NCBI GenBank assembly: GCA_965649765.1
Contig: OZ287753.1
Span: 60,450,001 to 60,514,000, forward strand
Reading direction: 5' to 3'
Length of the DNA: 64,000 nucleotides
DNA from: Bispira polyomma
Taxonomy: Eukaryota
Position numbers and translations under genes: made by a program. Positions 4,426 through 53,801 of the stretch are shown piece after piece; the stretch's first letter is position 1, and each line of letters begins with the position of its first letter. Under the pieces are notes generated by a model. That model was not told the origin of the DNA, ran no database searches, and saw only the letters and a list, made by a program, of their open reading frames with translations.

Positions 4426-7400
4426 CTGTAATATCATATAGTTTTTCTTTGAGGTCAATAAGCTATTTTTTTTAATTTTTTTTTTTAATTTGGATATTTA
4501 ACGTCCACTCTAGTACCTGTTTAGGTTATATTGGGAAGGGTAGTTGGAAACGCTGGAGGAAACAGTGCATACAGTTGATCAAGGTTCTGCACTGAAACCA
4601 GCGGCCCACAGTAAGGAACTACCACCTTTCCCACAAAGGCATCGACGGGATTCGAACTCACGCCGCCCAGAGGTGAGAGACCAGTGATTGTGAAGCGCAG
4701 TGCTTGCTAACCACTAGGCCACTGTGGCCCCGTGAACAAGCTATAACATACACGTTTAATACAACTAATTCAACCTTGTTTTTAGGGTTCTACTCTACTA
4801 CAATGGTATATTTATTTATCATATACAATGTTATAAATTACATTTACACAATTTGTAATATTGGGACAGTCTTGTTTTGTAATGCTTTGTCTACTTTCAT
4901 TATATAATTTAAAGAGTTAGTACTGTAGACACACAAATGCGCTTCTAATAAACCACATTGTGTGTGGTAGAGCTTATTTGTAACGATAGTACTTTATTTT
5001 TGTGGCCTTAAACTCGGTTTCTGGATAATATATTTGTATTTTTATCAGTACAACTAATATAGAATGATCTATAGTTTAATTGTATGCTGATTGATAAATT
5101 ATAATTGTCATCTTAGTAGGTATTTTGCGACATATTATACAAATATCAATGTGTATAATTGTAACAAAAAAAGACGACTATTTTTCAAAGTACACGCTCT
5201 ACAAATTCACATACAATTCACATACAAAGAAAAAATCAACACAGAAGTACACCACCAGAAAAAGGAAATTTCAGCATTATTTTGAATGATTTATTTTTCC
5301 AATTAAAATACAAAAACTGGGTTTATTTTCTAACAAAAAGAGTCCTTTGTATTCTTTATTTATACAACAAAAAGAAACATATTTCCACGAAGTAATAAAA
5401 TTTACAATGGTACTTGCATATAAAAATGTTTAAACCGACCACTAAAGAACAATTGAATGGCCGCTGTATGGGGTAAATGTGCTAAAATTGAAATTGTGAA
5501 TATAGGATAACATCTCATCAGCGCATTTATGTGTTTAAGTTCATAGACTCTTAATCATACACACCACTCGTGTAGATTACTAATATATACATCCCTGATA
5601 AAAGAAATTTTCTTATGATAGAAATACAATAGTCCATTATTTAAAAAAAATGATAATGTCTATAATTTAGGATATTTTTGCACTCACACCAGAATGATTT
5701 GTTCTGGAACATGTAGAAAAAGATGTAATTTAAAGGTTTACAGTGGTTCTTCTATATCTTTGACTTGTATGATATCTTACCTAAGGATAGCATTGGTTAC
5801 GGCAGACCCGTCATAGACAGGTACAGTGTGGCAGACCCCAGCCCCTACATCCAACACTTGACCAGTTTTCCGGCCTGAGGCATGCAGAGCTAACACAGCC
5901 TGAATAGCCACGTACATCGCTGGTGACTTGAAGGTCTCAAACATGATCTAAAACAGACAGGATCAAGTACCTTAAATGTATCATCTGAGAAAGTTCAAAA
6001 CACTAGAGTCTCAATAAACTTCTGTACATGTTTGACTTTCTGGGACTTTTTTCAGAAATGTTAATTTGTAAAACTGTTAAACATCACTGTAACAATGCTT
6101 TTGTTTAAGGTTTAGACCACGTTATATAATAAAAGAATTAATACGATAATGAAAACCTTTTGCAACATAAAAAGCTGGAAGTATTACTATTATTGTGGGC
6201 ACCTGGTAAATCCAATGTTTAGCAACCAACCTGATACACAGTCATGTCATCTACCGTGTTCTTTAACTTTTATTGTTTCATAGGCCACATCCTCGTGCTA
6301 AAGATCAATCATGAGGCTTAAAGATTGATCTTCTGTATCCCTGAGTTATCCTGTCACATTGTAAAGATAAATCTTTACAAACACAGATACATCAGGGAAG
6401 CCTAAAGATAACTCGAAAAGACAGAAGAATCGGGCCATTGTTACGATAACCTGGGAAGCCTAAAAATAACTCAGGGTTTGCAAAGCTAACTCGGGGGACG
6501 TAAAAAGTTGGCAGTACAGCAGGATTGAAATTGGGTCCAAAAATCACATAAAAGCCACTCGTGCAAGCAACTTCAGTTCATTCAGAAATTTTCAACAGTC
6601 AGAGAAGGGTGTGCATTTTAAGATACATATATAAAGGTTTTTGTTTGTTTCAAATATAAGTGATATTATAAGTTAAGATAATTATGCCACCAAAAAGAAA
6701 ACAACAAGGAAGAGGAGGATAGTTAAGAAGTAGGAGAGCAGGGAGTTCGACTTTTGGGATGTAGTGAGGGAACATCATTGCAGACGGACATCATTGCAGA
6801 AACTCAGCCGTCACAGCTGACACCGACAGATGTTCATGTCACAGTCACGGCTGGCAGGAGACACCAAGCGATATGGACTTAAAGGTTTCAGCCTTCAGTA
6901 GCCGTCATTCCAAAAAGGGGAAGATGAAGACTATGCTTCTGATAGATGCCGAGTAGGAGGCAGTTGTGGACTTTTTAAGAGTGAATGAGTTGTTGTACAA
7001 AAAGAAGGATCCTGATTATAAGGACACCCAAAAGAAGAACATTTTGTGGAAGGGGTTTTGTGATGAGAATGGGGTAGACCACGTGGAAGTCAAGAAGTGG
7101 TTCCAGTCGCAGCGGACTATGTTTGGGAAGCAGTCAGTCCCAAAGTCTAGCCAGGCTCCGCCACAGTTCACCCAGAGGCAGATATGGGTCACGGGGACCT
7201 TCGACTTTCTCAAGCCACCCTCATTAGACAGCCATAAAAGACCGCTTAATTCAAACCCATACCGTCGCTTCACTGGGGGCTGCACCAGGGTCGCACAGCT
7301 AGGTCGAGTCTTTCCTCAACACTATGCCCGGGGGCTGTGCATTCTGCGCATTACAGGCATGTCAAAGTCTCGAAATGAAATAGGACATTTGTTATAGCGC

Positions 7401-9936
7401 ACTTACAGAACACAGTGTCCTTTCAAATGCGCTTCCTCATGCGCAGTCACTATGGGCGCCGAGGTGCTTGGGGATGACCATTTATCAACATCCCCGAGGA
7501 TCTTTAATTTGCCACTGAAGATATTACTCAGTGACAGAGGACCGCCATTTTAAGTGGTCATCCAAGCCACTAGTCTTCTTATTCTTGCTTGTATATCTAA
7601 AACAGCTGTCACTTGTACTTGTAAAGAGGTAATTAAAACTTGTAGATTACTGGCAATCTGTAATGGTCTTTCTGAAATCATATTATCTGGTTGACTTTTA
7701 AAATTAAACTGACTGATTTTGTAATCAGAAACCCTTTATATAGTGTATCATGTGTAATTTGGAAGTATCGTGGCCCCCCGAGAGTGTGATTGGTAGGATT
7801 GGATCTGGAGAAGGAAAAACCACCCCAAGTTATCGTTAGTCATTAATTTGGCATTCCCCGGGGTTCAGTCGTGGGTGCAATTTTGTTTCCAATGTACACC
7901 ACTCCACTCAGCAAGATCATTGCTCATACATACAAAAACAGAAACTTTCATATTATGCTGATGATACCCAATTGTACATCCACCTTGCACCCGATTCTAC
8001 CCAGGCAGTTTTCACATCCTTACAGAACTGCTTGCTTTTAGGCGAATTCAACGTTTTCTCACCAAATCAACTGCAATCACTGTTGCCAACGTCTTGGTCA
8101 GCAGCAGGCTTGATTACTGCAACTCTCTGCTCCATTTCCTATCTTAGACGCCTTCATAACGTTCAACACTCACTGGCTCGCATTGTGGCCAAAATTTCTT
8201 ATATTACTCCTGTACGCAAGTCACTTCACTGGCTCCCAATAAAATATTGTGTTGCTTTCAAAACTGCAACAATTTTATACAAATTTCTAAATTCTGGATT
8301 ACCCCTGGATTACCACGATAGATTAGACCTATCGTTGTATCCGTACGAATTATCTTTAGCATTGTAAGCAGTTCTCCCGAGTTATTTTCAAAAATTGGGG
8401 CTGTAGGGGACGCAGATATTTCGTCCAGGATCCAATCAGCTCGATTAATCTTGCCATCTAAGGACCAATCGTGCTTTATCGGATCATGCTTCAGACCTCC
8501 ACTTGTGAAGCACAACGATTATAGTCGTGGAATGTAATGTTTCCCACCCTTTTTCAAATTATCGGGAGCAAATGACGTTTGCCCCCCGATCCCAAATCGG
8601 GGCCAACTCCCGATCACTCAGCTAAGTGCAACAACCCCTTTACCAGAGTCCGCTCTCTATTGGCATTAAAGCCTCGGTCAGCAGCACTCAATGTTTTCTA
8701 GAGTCACACTATCAACCACACACATACACCTACCTAATAATTAAGACCACCATATCTATAGGGCCACGATGGTGTATTGGCAACACATTTGCCTTTTACC
8801 TATGTCACCATTAGAATCAAAATTAGAGCCACACAACCAACCACAATTATACAGACACAAATGTACGTCCACCCAGTAAATTACCTTTGTCATCTTATCC
8901 CTATTAGCTTTAGGATTCAGTGGGGCAGTATTGGATGCTTTTATGTAGCCAAACAAACAACCACACATACACCCACTCAATCACAAACCATTACACATTT
9001 ACATATTCGAACTTTTGATAGCATTTAAATATTTATTTAAAGTATTCCTATGTTATATTTTTTCTGTGCTTTTTCTGTTTAAAGTTAAAGCAAAGTAATA
9101 TTTTGGTTGAAATCACTTTATCTTAATTGTAATCTCTTTTCGCAGGAACACAGCTTTTAGATTAGTTAGCCAATCTTTTCTTCTCAGAAAAATGTCTTTA
9201 TTACCGAAGTTACAAAGCTCACAGTGGTTGTAAAGATATACAATAATTTAGGTCCTCCTTAAAAATGTCATTTGCTGATTCATACCTGTATGAAAAAATT
9301 TATGTTGTCAGCTTTAAAGCTACATGGAGGAAACAGATATTTACTAAGGCGTCATATAACTGGAAGTGGCTACACTGAGATAAAAGGGTAGGCACTCTAT
9401 AATTACTGAAAGCAGTTATCACATAAAAGTCAGTTTGGAGTGAGTATTAAGATGAGTTAGTGTCCTTACAGGTGTTTGGGATAAAAAGTGATTTGTTTGG
9501 GGGTAATAAGTTATGCTATAGGATTACACTGGGACAAGGTAAATGTCAAATTTTGTTAACTGAAAAAGGTGTTGTCAGAGTTAAGTATAAGAGTTACAGG
9601 GAATTATGAAATAGTTTGTTCTAGAAAGTTATCAATTAAATTTAAATTGTTGTATTAGTTATATGTAAAGAACAGTGATTATGTTAAACATTAAAATTAA
9701 AGGATCATAAATAAACAAATATGGAAAATGGTGATTTTGTGTTTATAGAAATATCAACATACAGGACCTAGTGTTTTACTTATATATAACAAAATCAGAC
9801 ACATACAGACAAATAAAAATATATGATCATTTGTCTTACCTCTGTCATCTTCTCCCTGTTGGCTCTAGGGTTCAGTGGGGCCTCAGTCAGCAGTACTGGA
9901 TGCTCCTCTGGTGCTACCTTCAGCTCATTGTAGAAG

Positions 9937-9972
<36 letters not shown>

Positions 9973-12900
9973 GTGACAATACCATGCTCAATAGGATTCT
10001 TGATAGTGAGGATACCGCTACTACTCTGGGCCTCAGTCAGCAGTAATGGATGTTCCTCTGGTGCTACAATCATCTCATTGTAGAAGGTGTCATGCCAGAT
10101 ATTCTCCATATCACTCCAGTTGATGATAGTACCGTGCTCAATAGGGTTCTTGATAGTACGGATACCTCTGTTACTCAGGGCCTCATCTCCAATATAGCAG
10201 TCCTTCCCACCCGCCATCACTTCCTGGTAGTACAGAATGGAACAAAAGAAGTTTAAATCATCCGAATCACTATACTTTACAAGTACCAGAAGGTGGGTGG
10301 TCTGTCATTATGTGCAGGAGACAAAGCAATAATTCGCTGAAAATAAGATTCCCCGTGATGCCACCCCCCTAAAGACTTTGTTATTTTTTACCAACAATAA
10401 GTACATGGACAAAATTGGCCTTCTAATTTTGGTTGTTAGGGTGAGGATTGTTTTTTTTTTATATGTCAAAAAATTTTTTTTCAATATACAGTAATGTGTA
10501 TCAAGTGGGTGTATGTTTTTTTGCTTTGCATTTCATGAGTTTAAATGGAATATTTATGACATCTTTGGATAGAAAATACATGACCAGAAATATCCTTTTT
10601 AAACTTTGATTATTTTTCAAAGAAAGTTAATCAATCATCTGTAAAATAATTTTTCATATAAAAAATATGTTGGACGTTTCTGTAACTAGTGACATGCTTA
10701 ACACTAGTTAATTGATCTGAAGACAGTCCCTTATGATACGAATTCAGCTTGAAGATTGGGTTGTACTTGCCACGGTGTGATGATTCTCCAGCCCTTGAGA
10801 GATGACCATACTATGTAGGAGTGGGAGAAAAGTGGAACTTTGTAATGGTGAACAAGGACCATATTCACAAACTTTCTCAGAATGCAATTATTGATCTGAA
10901 GACAGTCCATTATGATACCAATTCAGCTTGAATATTGGGTTGTACTTGCCACAGTGTGGTGATCCTCCAGCCCTTGAGAGATGAACATACTATAGGAGTG
11001 GGAGAAAAGTGGAACCTTGTAATGGTGAACAAGGACCATATTCACAAACATTCTCAGAATGCAATTATTAGAATATTCTTAGTTCTCAGCCAATCAGTTT
11101 TTGGGAAAATACTTTTAGCCAATCAAATTTCTTGAGACAAAAAGGCAAACAATCATTGTGAATACTAGCCCTATTCTTATGTAAGGACTGAAAGTTCTGC
11201 ATTTTCCCAATGATTGTAAAAACACTATTGTCAAGACAAGGCAGAAAGAATCAGGTCAGAAGAGAAAGTGTTCTGAGAAAAACATGAGGGAAAACTACAC
11301 TGTGTCAAGAACAAGGTAAACAAAGGAAAGGGCAAAGTGTGTGATTACACCAGAAATACTTCATGTTAGTGTTATGTTTTGATTGTGAAAGTACCAGGTT
11401 TGCCAGGGAGGGGACAAAGGATAAACAGGTGATTACCATGAACAGTAGTGAAGACACAGTCTACAGTTAAACCTCTTGTGCAACCTTTGCCATATTATGT
11501 GGTATTCTGTATGCAGACTGCTACAATAGACAACATTCAGAAAACTGTACTGAGTCACTTCCTAGCTGATGCAATAATGGACACTAAAACTGCATTGTGG
11601 GCCAATAATTATTGTTGTGCAATTGGAATTAAAACAAAATATCAGGACTTGGCAAAAAAGGTCAGAAAAGAAGCCAATATCGATGATATTGTATATTCTT
11701 TGCAACTTGAAAATAAACTCAATAAAATGTCATATTTTGTTATAGTCCCTTAAGTTTAAGCATGATATCTAATTAAGGCCCTTCTAAAGAACTCAATAGT
11801 ATCTCTTTTTTGAAAGACATAACCAACTAGAACATTGTTTAAAAAGTATGCTTGAAAAGACTAGCTTTCTGTTTTTCAAAAAAACTGGTTGTTAAATCAG
11901 CAAAATATTTTGTATGGCCATAGGTTTCCTATCTAGTAAGTTTAAATCTGGGCCTGTATTCAGTAAAGGTCTCCGACTTGTGGGGTTTTTCCACTATCAC
12001 AAAGTATCCGGGAGAGGCCCTGATTATGCGATCGGGACCAATCCTTGGCATTTCCCCACAATGTTTTAAAAAAAGGGCACGAAAAAATGCGCCACCAGAA
12101 CTGCTTGCGATCCAATAGATAGGTCGTAAGCACATTATGATCCAGTCATTGGACACTAAGATAAGTTGGCTGATGAACAACTGATCCAGATCGAAATCTT
12201 AGTATTACTAATTGGCAGGTACTGTTTTCATCAAATGCTATATAAACGAGGGCTCAAACTTAAATCCAGACAGTTTTAATTCAGAAGTTAAGTGATCAAC
12301 ATGATTCCACAAAGAATAATAAATATTGCAAATGGAATTGCAAACGGCTGTAATTGCCTACATGCAAGTACAAGTGATGGCTAATATGGACATCGAAGGC
12401 AGGAGAAGAAAATTAAGAAGGCAAAGGGAGACACTGAAGCTACAGCCTAAGACCAAGGTTCTGAATCAAGCCATGGCTCAGCAGAAGCGTGAAACATGCC
12501 CACTACACAGCACTTATGTCACGCCTGGAGCCACAAGATCTCCAGTCGTACCTCAACATTATCAGGATCCCCCTGACGTATTCCAGGAGATGGAGAGGGT
12601 GGGGCACAGGATACAGAGACAGACCACCTGGTACAGGAAGGCACTGTTCCCTGGCTCAAGATAGCTATCACATTGAGGAATTTGGCCACTGGGGAGTCCT
12701 GCACATCGCTACAGTACTCGTTTGTAGTGGGCAGGTCAACCATAACTAAGTTTGTGCCACAAATTTGCCAGGCCATCATCGACGAGTACCAGTAAAAATT
12801 CCTCACATGTCCCACCAGCCAGGACGACTGGAAGAAAGTCAAGTCCATGTTCCGGAACACGTGGAACGTTCATAATTTCCTGGGGGCCATAGCTGACAAA

Positions 12901-15076
12901 GACATTGGTATGAGATGCCAGAAGAAGGATGGAAGCAAGTACTTCAACTACAAGGGGTACCACTCAATCGTCATGCTTGTCGTGGTAGATGGGATTACTG
13001 TTTCCTGTGGGTCAACACAGGTACAAGCGGCTCATGTTCGGATGGCCAGATTTTGAACATATCCAAACTAAAGGAGAATATAGAAGACCACTCAATCAAC
13101 TTTCCCCCATCCCCCTAAAACAATTAGCATTGTCAGAACCCCTGTCCCCTACTTCATCCTAGGAGATGACGCGTTTGCCCTAAAGACATGGTTCATGAAA
13201 CCGTACTCCCGACGAGGGATGGACATTAACAAAAGGTTATCTAATTGGTATTTTTGGAAGTCATCTATTGGCAGCGTTGACTTCTTCATAAGGGTGGTTA
13301 TAACAGCACATTTTAAAGCACCAGGAAAAGTTCCAGTAAGTAGAGAAAGATTAAATAGCTTAGTGATAGTTGATGCTAGAATATATTCTGCATGGGAAAT
13401 CTTTAAAAAATTTTACTATGTCATCATTATTGACGAGAAGGAGAAAACATAGGCATAGGCTCAGACGAGAAACTTGATGCCATGTTTTGATCTGGAAAAC
13501 TGTCTCTTATCTTTTTATTTTGTGCTAAAAAGAGGACAGAATTATTACAGAGGGATTTAACTGAGATGACATTAGTTTTGTAAGTACCTTATTGTGTTCC
13601 TTATTTTCGTGGCATAAATTTTATGACACCAGACAGGACCAATCTCAATACGCTGTGCCTTGTAAAGCAGAGATACAGGGTAAAAATGTTACATTTAGTC
13701 CAGAAAAACATATCAGTTGCATTTTACAAGTGCAAATGGTACAGCACGATTATCTTTAATGATATCTTTATAAGCTATCCAATAGTATAGTTTTTCCAGG
13801 GTATTTCACTTAGGGCCTCTGATAAAGGCTTACATTTTATGTATCTAACATATAAGTTTTATATCCATGCTGATAGTATTTTTGCCCTTTTCTGAATATG
13901 ACTTGTAAATATAAATTGTTAAAAACATACTGTATGTCCCAAAATGGGGGACCTTAGTAGTAAACATGTTACCATGTTTAGTACAGCGGGGTTAAAAAGT
14001 ATTAGATATCCATTTGGTTTACTATGTAAATTATATTCTGTCCTCTTGCCACTCATATGCAAAGACATGCCTGTAGATATTCAGTTACACCTTCTTTTTA
14101 TAAAAAAAAATTTCTCGTATTATTTCTGTAACAATAAAGGAATAAATTATTACAAATGTATAGTAAACTAGTTGTAGGTGTCTGTATCAAACAGTTTCAA
14201 CTTTCTGGTATATAATATATAAAAATACATTTGTGCACTTAGCTATTAATAAACTTGTATAATAATAATGTACTTAGTACATATACCACAACCAATGATT
14301 CCTTAACAAAGAAAGAGACCAATAATTCACAGTTTAGTAAACATGAATTATATGATATTTTTGAATATGTTAGAACAGATTAATGTGTGTATCAATACCT
14401 AAAATATGTATTGTAAAACTAGTATATATTTCTGTTCATTCATGTTTTTCTTTTATATCTATCTTTTTTTCTTAAACCATTGTACTAGTACCAATGACTG
14501 TACGAAGTAAGTCAATAATAATAAACCATTTAATTCAAGAACAAAAATAACACAGAAATTCAGAAACGTTTCTAGAATTTATGGGACAAGGCGCGGCCAT
14601 GTTGATTTTGGTGTATAAATACATTGTTTAGATTTAGGGATAACAGTTATTCCAGAATATTTTATCTTTCATTTTGATAACTACTTGTAATATGGCCACA
14701 CTCTGTCCAGTTAATTATTGACTAAACCTGGTCTGGGCAGAATAAATAGGTGGTCATTTAAAAACCACCATCGATCATTTTGAAACTGCCAAAGTCAACA
14801 CTTGGATCAGATACAATGATGTGTCAATTAGTCATCAGTTTCATTATCTGTTTAATTTAACAAAACTAGAATTGACTCTGTTTCAAAATCACCTATTTAA
14901 ATTTAATACTGACGCCTTTCCCTTGACTTCTATCATTGGCTGAGACAACGTACCTGGTGACGTGGTCGACCAACTATGGAAGGGAACACAGCACGTGGTG
15001 CATCATCACCAGCAAAACCTATCTTAGACATCCCAGAGCCATTGTCAAATACCAAAACAGATGCTTTTTCAGCCAT
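3828..15076 (-). CDS. Act: Actin-A, divergent actin paralog, 423 aa; join(15076-14954, 10223-9840, 5947-5781, 4425-3828)
   Basis: Four exons translate to actin; all junctions are GT-AG at the same positions as Actin-B. 123+384+167+598=1272 nt, open frame ending IVHTKCV-TAG. Confidence 0.88.
4467..4731 (-). mobile_element. tRNA-derived SINE in Actin-A intron
   Basis: A-box TGGCCTAGTGG, B-box GTTCGAATCCC, A-rich tail; TSD gtcaataagctat (4454-4466) / gtgaacaagctat (4732-4744); absent from the matching Actin-B intron. Confidence 0.85.
5781..5947 (-). CDS. Act: Actin-A coding exon 3 ([16 protein letters not shown]...[24 protein letters not shown])
   Basis: Manual translation; 167 nt as in Actin-B; TAG acceptor and GTAAG donor. 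Confidence 0.9.
6683..7230 (+). mobile_element. PIF/Harbinger-type Myb/SANT(MADF)-like ORF remnant
   Basis: [25 protein letters not shown]...[11 protein letters not shown]...QRQIW....DFLKP pattern; disrupted N-terminal part. Confidence 0.7.
7370..7575 (-). mobile_element. SINE fragment (core plus L2-type 3' tail)
   Basis: Minus strand has a GGATGAC..TTAAAATGGCGGTCC...TTAAAGATCC core and an AAGCGCATTTGA...GCGCTATAACAAAT tail. Confidence 0.5.
7848..8305 (+). mobile_element. L2/CR1-type LINE RT fragment, internally deleted
   Basis: [31 protein letters not shown] motifs across frames. Confidence 0.8.
9840..10223 (-). CDS. Act: Actin-A coding exon 2, 128 codons, with in-frame 150-nt duplication
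   Basis: CAG acceptor at 10224-10225, GTAAG donor at 9839; two copies of the PIEHG...EEHP.LLTEA block. Confidence 0.88.
10711..11069. repeat. Tandem duplication, about 179-bp unit x2
   Basis: attgatctgaagacagtcc...gaatgcaattatt at 10711 and 10890. Confidence 0.85.
11950..13237 (+). mobile_element. PIF/Harbinger element, left TIR plus transposase pseudogene (~12301-13237), 3' truncated
   Basis: [43 protein letters not shown] motifs; putative TIR GGGCCTGTATTCAGTAAAGG at 11950. Confidence 0.85.
13238..13410 (-). mobile_element. L2/CR1 LINE fragment
   Basis: Translates [34 protein letters not shown], the RT N-terminal region. Confidence 0.65.
14954..15076 (-). CDS. Act: Actin-A coding exon 1 ([18 protein letters not shown]...RPRHQ)
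   Basis: DNGSG phosphate-1 motif; donor GTACG at 14953; upstream acceptor at 15102-15103. Confidence 0.9.
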
Positions 15077-25069: not shown

Positions 25070-28664
<3,595 letters not shown>

Positions 28665-49001: not shown

Positions 49002-49129
49002 NNNNNNNNNNNNNNNNNNNNNNNNNNNNNNNNNNNNNNNNNNNNNNNNNNNNNNNNNNNNNNNNNNNNNNNNNNNNNNNNNNNNNNNNNNNNNNNNNNN
49101 NNNNNNNNNNNNNNNNNNNNNNNNNNNNN
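49002..49129. other. Assembly gap (N run)
   Basis: Run of N bases. Confidence 0.99.

Positions 49130-51441: not shown

Positions 51442-53801
<2,360 letters not shown>

Follow-up and report, generated by a model that had tools for sequence, protein, structure and literature searches.

Actin is among the most length-invariant of proteins, and its conventional form, at ~375 residues, is subject to very strong purifying selection. Actin-related proteins (Arps) typically differ from actin through insertions in surface loops, the stepwise origin of which is undocumented. Mammalian ACTL7/ACTRT are lineage-specific Arps derived from actin, and outside this family a microhomology-bounded, in-frame duplication within a protein is familiar from the FLT3 internal tandem duplication (FLT3-ITD) of human leukemia. 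The testis-specific Arps of Drosophila are described as fast-evolving, lineage-specific "orphan" Arps that likewise derive from actin (bioRxiv 10.1101/665299). Here we describe Actin-A, a minus-strand gene in a 64,000-nucleotide stretch of the Bispira polyomma genome (contig OZ287753.1, C6:60450001-60514000; hereafter the window), whose second exon encodes actin residues ~59-108 twice. Coordinates are those of the window unless prefixed by C6. We read Actin-A as an apparently intact gene from a divergent actin subfamily that is specific to its lineage and under weak constraint, with selection on the protein after the duplication, and we give this reading an even chance of being right.

A tandem duplication within exon 2 of Actin-A

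The heptamer GAGGCCC occurs three times on the minus strand of exon 2 (10178-10184, 10028-10034 and 9878-9884), at a spacing of exactly 150 nt. The first heptamer supplies the codons of actin E57-A58 together with the first base of the next codon, the second lies at the end of the upstream copy of a 150-nt unit (c1, 10177-10028), and the third ends the downstream copy (c2, 10027-9878). Both copies are in frame, and they differ at 20 of 150 bases (13% divergence) with no insertions or deletions (indels); translation across their junction reads LLTEA/QSSSGIL. Tandem Repeats Finder reports a single array at 9878-10185 with a period of 150, 2.1 copies, 87% matches, no indels and a score of 476. 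Aligned with solved actin chains, the piece 9963-10223 covers residues 47-109 and stops matching where the second copy starts; we therefore assign the duplicated unit to actin residues ~59-108. The window as a whole holds nine copies of GAGGCCC against 1.67 expected, an excess that is due to its actin copies. The heptamer triplet and the in-frame 50-residue duplication are thus as the original prediction had described them, and the tandem duplication within exon 2 is real and far beyond chance.

Four minus-strand exons (15076-14954, 10223-9840, 5947-5781 and 4425-3828) make up the gene, giving 423 codons and a TAG stop with GT-AG at all three introns. The exons were placed by tblastn with an intronless actin from the same genome, and the joined 423-codon protein was put together in silico for the codon counts and the simulation only. 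Exon 1 (41 codons) ends in GRPRHQ and is followed by the donor GTACGT; exon 2 (128 codons), with the duplication, lies between the acceptor ctaccag and the donor gtaaga; exon 3 ends in the split codon AG; and exon 4 runs from the completing G and IDLAGRD to HTKCV and the stop. In order, the introns open with GTACGT, GTAAGA and GTAAGA and close with ACCAG, TTTAG and TACAG. The Pfam Actin profile (PF00022) is matched in order along the exon pieces, at 2-40 in exon 1, 45-104 (c1) and 55-116 (c2) as two adjacent matches in exon 2, 116-169 in exon 3 and 184-409 in exon 4, all above the 27-bit cut-off. We found no disabling lesion (stop, frameshift, lost splice site or lost start) in Actin-A, with zero stops, frameshifts or lost splice dinucleotides in 1272 nt and 12 splice bases; the open frame and splice junctions that had been predicted were borne out in the checked model.

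The duplication is unique in this genome. A 261-nt junction-spanning query (9963-10223) matches in full only once in 1.04 Gb, at its own locus, and the other 37 matches stop at or before query position 196, which is the end of the first unit; on these grounds the duplication belongs to Actin-A alone, in a genome with well over a hundred actin-profile matches. Single-copy paralogs in the same cluster (copies B, D and E) have GAGGCCC on either side of the unit at the same 150-nt spacing (in B, at 27893 and 28043), and in each of copies C and F a single base change has altered one site of the pair. The junction in Actin-A therefore lies in a 7-nt direct repeat that existed beforehand, in agreement with the predicted origin between two microhomologies. 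Microhomology-mediated tandem duplication is recognized by a head-to-tail arrangement with its junction in a prior flanking direct repeat, and Actin-A shows both. Replication slippage or unequal exchange at GAGGCCC probably produced the in-frame, head-to-tail copy of 150 nt. The event is old, with an age of ~0.06 neutral substitutions per site that takes up about four fifths of the gene's own branch; by likelihood 0.185 neutral substitutions per codon have accumulated since, compared with 0.04 on the earlier part of that branch.

A divergent subfamily and probable selection on the protein

Actin-A sits in a ~190 kb tandem actin cluster in which all copies lie on one strand. Downstream of it are five canonical-like copies, B to F, four of which (B, D, E and F) are intact, with a mutual protein identity of 99%. 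Copy C (51445-53783, minus strand) retains exons 1-3, but an internal deletion has cut its exon 4 to the last ~38 codons, and it is a probable pseudogene. Upstream of Actin-A (C6:60377583-60439515) lie three sister copies, G1, G2 and G3, all of them broken. The lesion in G1 is a TGA in exon 1. G2 has lost one nucleotide from exon 2, the donor of that exon has changed from GT to AT, and a TAG interrupts exon 4. In G3, exon 3 is truncated and contains a stop, and a +1 insertion shifts the frame of exon 4. Actin-A shares with these three a D-loop that is two residues shorter, DVGAGV for DAGDGV, YDGSAVTN for YEGYALPH, a non-acidic N-terminus and HTKC at its end. In two of the three sisters, exons 3 and 4 stand 14-17 kb apart.

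In a codon tree the divergent subfamily is monophyletic with 100% bootstrap support, Actin-A occupies its shortest branch, and the four genes together are sister to the local canonical-like actins (100% support). Because Actin-A groups with its three neighbors at this level and is 81% identical to copy B with c1 left out, it is a recent actin offshoot by sequence and falls outside the ancient Arp classes (Arp1-Arp10). The original prediction had taken the gene to be an otherwise conventional actin. This view did not survive, since the D-loop, the phosphate-2 loop (DVGAGV), the W-loop and the N-terminus are all altered and three of the four subfamily members are pseudogenes. Actin-A is the sole intact member of a divergent, largely dead subfamily rather than a conventional actin with an added module.

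The two copies of the unit have evolved very differently. Compared with all paralogs, c1 has 12 replaced codons (Q59L, K61N, L65R, I75T, V76I, T77I, D80S, K84N, H88D, L94M, K95I and V103L) and one to three silent changes, whereas c2 has only two replaced codons, K61S and R62S, both at the junction (QSKR to QSSS), and one or two silent changes. Thus, c1 has changed at a quarter of its residues and c2 has kept the family sequence. The difference of 12 replaced codons to two gives a two-sided binomial value of 0.013, and this count is robust to adjacent double substitutions. Private residues make up 12 of the 50 positions in c1, compared with 25 of 372 in the rest of the protein. The polarity of changes was taken from comparison with extant paralogs together with likelihoods that sum over unobserved states. 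When equal age is imposed on the copies, the codon likelihood gives omega (dN/dS) values of 2.1 for c1 and 0.38 for c2. A common omega is rejected (twice the log-likelihood difference, 2dlnL, of 8.36 with 1 degree of freedom, p about 0.004), as is neutrality of both copies (2dlnL 8.61 with 2 degrees of freedom, p about 0.013). We also observed adjacent double substitutions, three in c1 (CTC to CGT, GAT to AGT and AAG to ATT) and one in c2 (AAG to AGT), an unexplained clustering within 150 nt.

Nei-Gojobori omega is 0.04-0.08 in most pairs among B, D, E and F and about 0.4 between Actin-A and these copies; for D and E, which are nearly identical, the estimate is 0.21 and draws on 12 differences. 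Branch values were obtained with our own GY94 branch-model likelihood on the codon tree, with c1 left out; omega is 0.07 for the canonical clade (B, D, E and F), 0.49 for the stem of the divergent subfamily, 0.65 for the broken sisters and 0.58 for Actin-A's own branch. In a neutral simulation over the 0.185 substitutions per codon since the duplication, the frame, start codon and splice dinucleotides survive together in 4% of trials, with indels uncounted. This low survival and the different omegas of c1 and c2 point to selection on the protein after the duplication, probably for a good part of the time since; selection in the present day is a separate matter.

The solved actin fold offers a view of how two copies might be accommodated. 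The native position is most likely taken by c2, and c1 would probably form a ~50-residue insert between residues 58 and 59, at a short subdomain 2 helix next to the D-loop and near the pointed-end face. In actin the subdomain 2 helix beside the D-loop belongs to the face that makes longitudinal filament contacts, and an insert here would be expected to hinder those contacts, much as insertions do in Arps. Within c1 there is a radical replacement, L65R, at a position that is buried in actin, along with changes in the sensor loop. Judged by their sequence, the altered D-loop, W-loop and N-terminus predict a non-polymerizing or capping-type actin-like protein, if one is made at all.

Competing readings and the surrounding sequence

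The rival that survives best is that Actin-A is a cryptic pseudogene, with function lost at or after the duplication (which may itself have been disabling by disrupting the fold) and a frame that is open by chance. We hold this to be possible, if on the doubtful side, and much of what favors it weighs at the same time against selection on the protein after the duplication. The omega of 0.58 on the gene's own branch shows no significant drop below 1 (2dlnL 2.78) and is inseparable from the 0.65 of the broken sisters (2dlnL 0.11), so that on terminal-branch omega alone Actin-A could be dead. Stops, frameshifts or lost splice sites have disabled three of the four genes in the subfamily, and with the canonical copy C also broken, gene death is common in the cluster. 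The introns of Actin-A have been enlarged by inserted elements, to 4.7 and 3.9 kb compared with 0.4 and 1.7 kb in copy B. A sequencing-run index lists no RNA run of the species with exon 2. The exon was found there in just two runs, both of unknown kind and derived from a single sample, which contain 84% of its sampled words; the other 22 rows contain just 3 of 31 exon 2 words, which correspond to a universally conserved piece of actin. An open frame by itself says little about function, and if the gene died recently, with no more than 0.05 neutral substitutions per codon since then, 41% of trials still leave the frame open.

Other points that weaken the case for selection concern the asymmetry between the copies and the search for relatives. 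The asymmetry is based on 14 codons, and three of the c1 changes are adjacent double substitutions, for which codon models that work in single steps give too high an omega. Conversion of c2 at an early time by a sister gene that was still intact could also have given such an asymmetry; against this, c2 keeps subfamily-specific states plus two private changes, and no extant copy lies within fewer than 8 differences of it. The looped-out placement of c1 is itself a probable arrangement drawn from known actin structure. A protein word search with exon 4 gave a best identity of 83% and no ortholog, near-identical fragment or fragment derived from a transcript, a weak negative in that its length window excludes proteins of 423 residues. 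The same search with the junction piece, under the same length window and so equally weak, gave a best identity of 72%, with single-unit exon 2 open reading frames (ORFs) only and no other actin with a doubled unit.

A gene that had been dead since the duplication is nonetheless difficult to reconcile with several of our results. The two copies should then have decayed alike, yet both equal omegas and joint neutrality are rejected; substitutions alone would have left the frame open with a probability of only 0.04; and the coding sequence and its splice bases are free of lesions throughout. The comparison of dN/dS proposed in the original prediction thus gave a divided answer, in that the copies do differ and are not both neutral, but the gene's own branch cannot be told apart from 1. 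We infer that Actin-A is an actin-like gene in rapid evolution or else a gene just entering the decay that killed its three sisters, and we regard a living and a dead gene today as about equally probable. Without expression, it would be a case of early gene death in a tandem cluster, instructive but ordinary.

The proposal of a functional neo-actin stays a possibility. Different regimes in the two copies and the low chance of frame survival speak for selection on the protein after the duplication, and a branch omega like that of the dead sisters speaks against it. In its full form, with an expressed, functional actin-like protein in which c1 would have become a novel surface module of subdomain 2 under positive selection (omega about 2), we consider the proposal unlikely. 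Were such a module real, it would be a natural snapshot of an Arp-type insertion born from actin's own sequence. Expression by itself would make Actin-A a natural case of an actin fold that tolerates a 50-residue self-duplication, with selection preserving one copy while the other could vary freely.

A further alternative, also raised in the original prediction, is that one 150-nt unit is spliced out as a newborn intron (10067 to 9918, minus strand; ATT/GTAGCA to CTGAAG/, with slashes at the splice sites) to leave a protein of normal length. We find this very improbable and disfavor it as the main form. No other GT..AG pair in exon 2 has a spacing of exactly 150 nt, and removal of the sequence between these two sites would preserve the frame. 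Both sites are weak, however, as judged by a rough, hand-made consensus score: the donor scores -4.6, compared with 5.7-6.3 for the gene's real donors, and the acceptor, which is purine-rich and lacks a pyrimidine tract, scores -1.2. Splicing here would also run counter to the constraint that we observe, since it would retain most of the fast-evolving c1 at the expense of most of the conserved c2. The AAG before GTAGCA had been taken as a change specific to the second copy, but it is present in all four members of the divergent subfamily, and the AAG/GT that such an intron needs therefore predates the duplication. Other in-frame GT..AG pairs in exon 2 that could remove c1 are all weak by the same score.

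An assembly or collapse artefact is next to impossible, for although tandem repeats can in general be misassembled, we found no point in its support, the 13% divergence without indels is unlike a misassembled identical repeat (as the original prediction had rightly argued from the diverged copies), and the two runs noted above hold 84% of the exon's sampled words, albeit from a sample that may be the assembly's own.

The introns and flanks of Actin-A have features of their own. At 8881-8960 on the minus strand, intron 2 contains a degenerate relic that corresponds to the 3' end of exon 2 plus the donor (gtaa), and one or two such degenerate tandem relics are present in intron 2 of A, C (~52840-52930) and, beyond the window, D and F, and thus in both subfamilies. 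These relics show that the same exon end had already undergone an older tandem duplication. In intron 2 of copy B (~27700-27790, minus strand), the place of the relic exon end is taken by a minisatellite with a 15-nt unit (GGGACAAAAGTAACC-like). Also within intron 2 of Actin-A is a plus-strand ORF of 143 residues (6966-7397), in which Pfam recognizes a MADF DNA-binding domain (E 5e-5) and which probably belongs to an inserted element. No Pfam match was obtained for two neighboring ORFs, at 7972-8367 and 12326-13118. Two ~180-nt direct repeats stand head to tail in intron 1 (10712-11068), visible in the sequence but unreported by Tandem Repeats Finder at a score of 80. The sequence upstream of Actin-A shows homology only with its sister G1, and no promoter in common with B to F. 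A run of 128 N at 49002-49129 marks an assembly gap or a masked stretch.

Comparison with actins, engineered repeats and orphan Arps

Our literature search returned no described actin with an internal tandem duplication; the nearest idea in it is that of rapidly evolving, lineage-specific Arps derived from actin. Both ingredients of Actin-A, a divergent actin paralog and a microhomology-bounded, in-frame tandem duplication, are of known kinds. With conventional actin, as represented by PF00022 and the neighbors B, D, E and F, Actin-A shares the fold family, the exon structure and the order of profile matches, and it keeps the DNGSG phosphate-1 loop, Q137, H161 and the GGS/T adenosine motif (LAGGSTM). 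It departs from conventional actin in length (423 residues compared with ~375, with residues ~59-108 present twice) and in constraint (omega 0.58 compared with 0.07). Two residues are missing from its D-loop, its N-terminus is no longer acidic, DVGAG replaces DSGDG/DAGDG with the second Asp changed to Ala, and the W-loop reads YDGSAVTN in place of YEGYALPH. Actin-A thus has neither the length of ~375 residues nor the very strong purifying selection that characterize conventional actins.

Engineered tandem segment repeats in T4 lysozyme, reportedly from the Matthews laboratory, provide a structural parallel in which a segment is duplicated within a folded domain, with one copy native and the other accommodated as an insert. 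Those repeats were designed and span about one helix, whereas the duplication in Actin-A is natural, covers 50 residues from parts of two subdomains and is described here at the level of sequence. The FLT3-ITD class resembles Actin-A in the form of the event, which is head-to-tail, in frame and inside one exon, with breakpoints in a prior short direct repeat (7 nt in Actin-A). Unlike FLT3-ITD, which is a somatic gain of function, the event in Actin-A is germline, fixed in the assembly and old at 13% divergence.

The orphan Arps are similar to Actin-A in being young, lineage-restricted actin offshoots with rapid protein evolution and altered filament-contact surfaces. Actin-A differs from them in being known here from its sequence alone and in that its insertion is a tandem copy of its own segment rather than novel sequence. 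The gene itself nests inside its species' own actin cluster.

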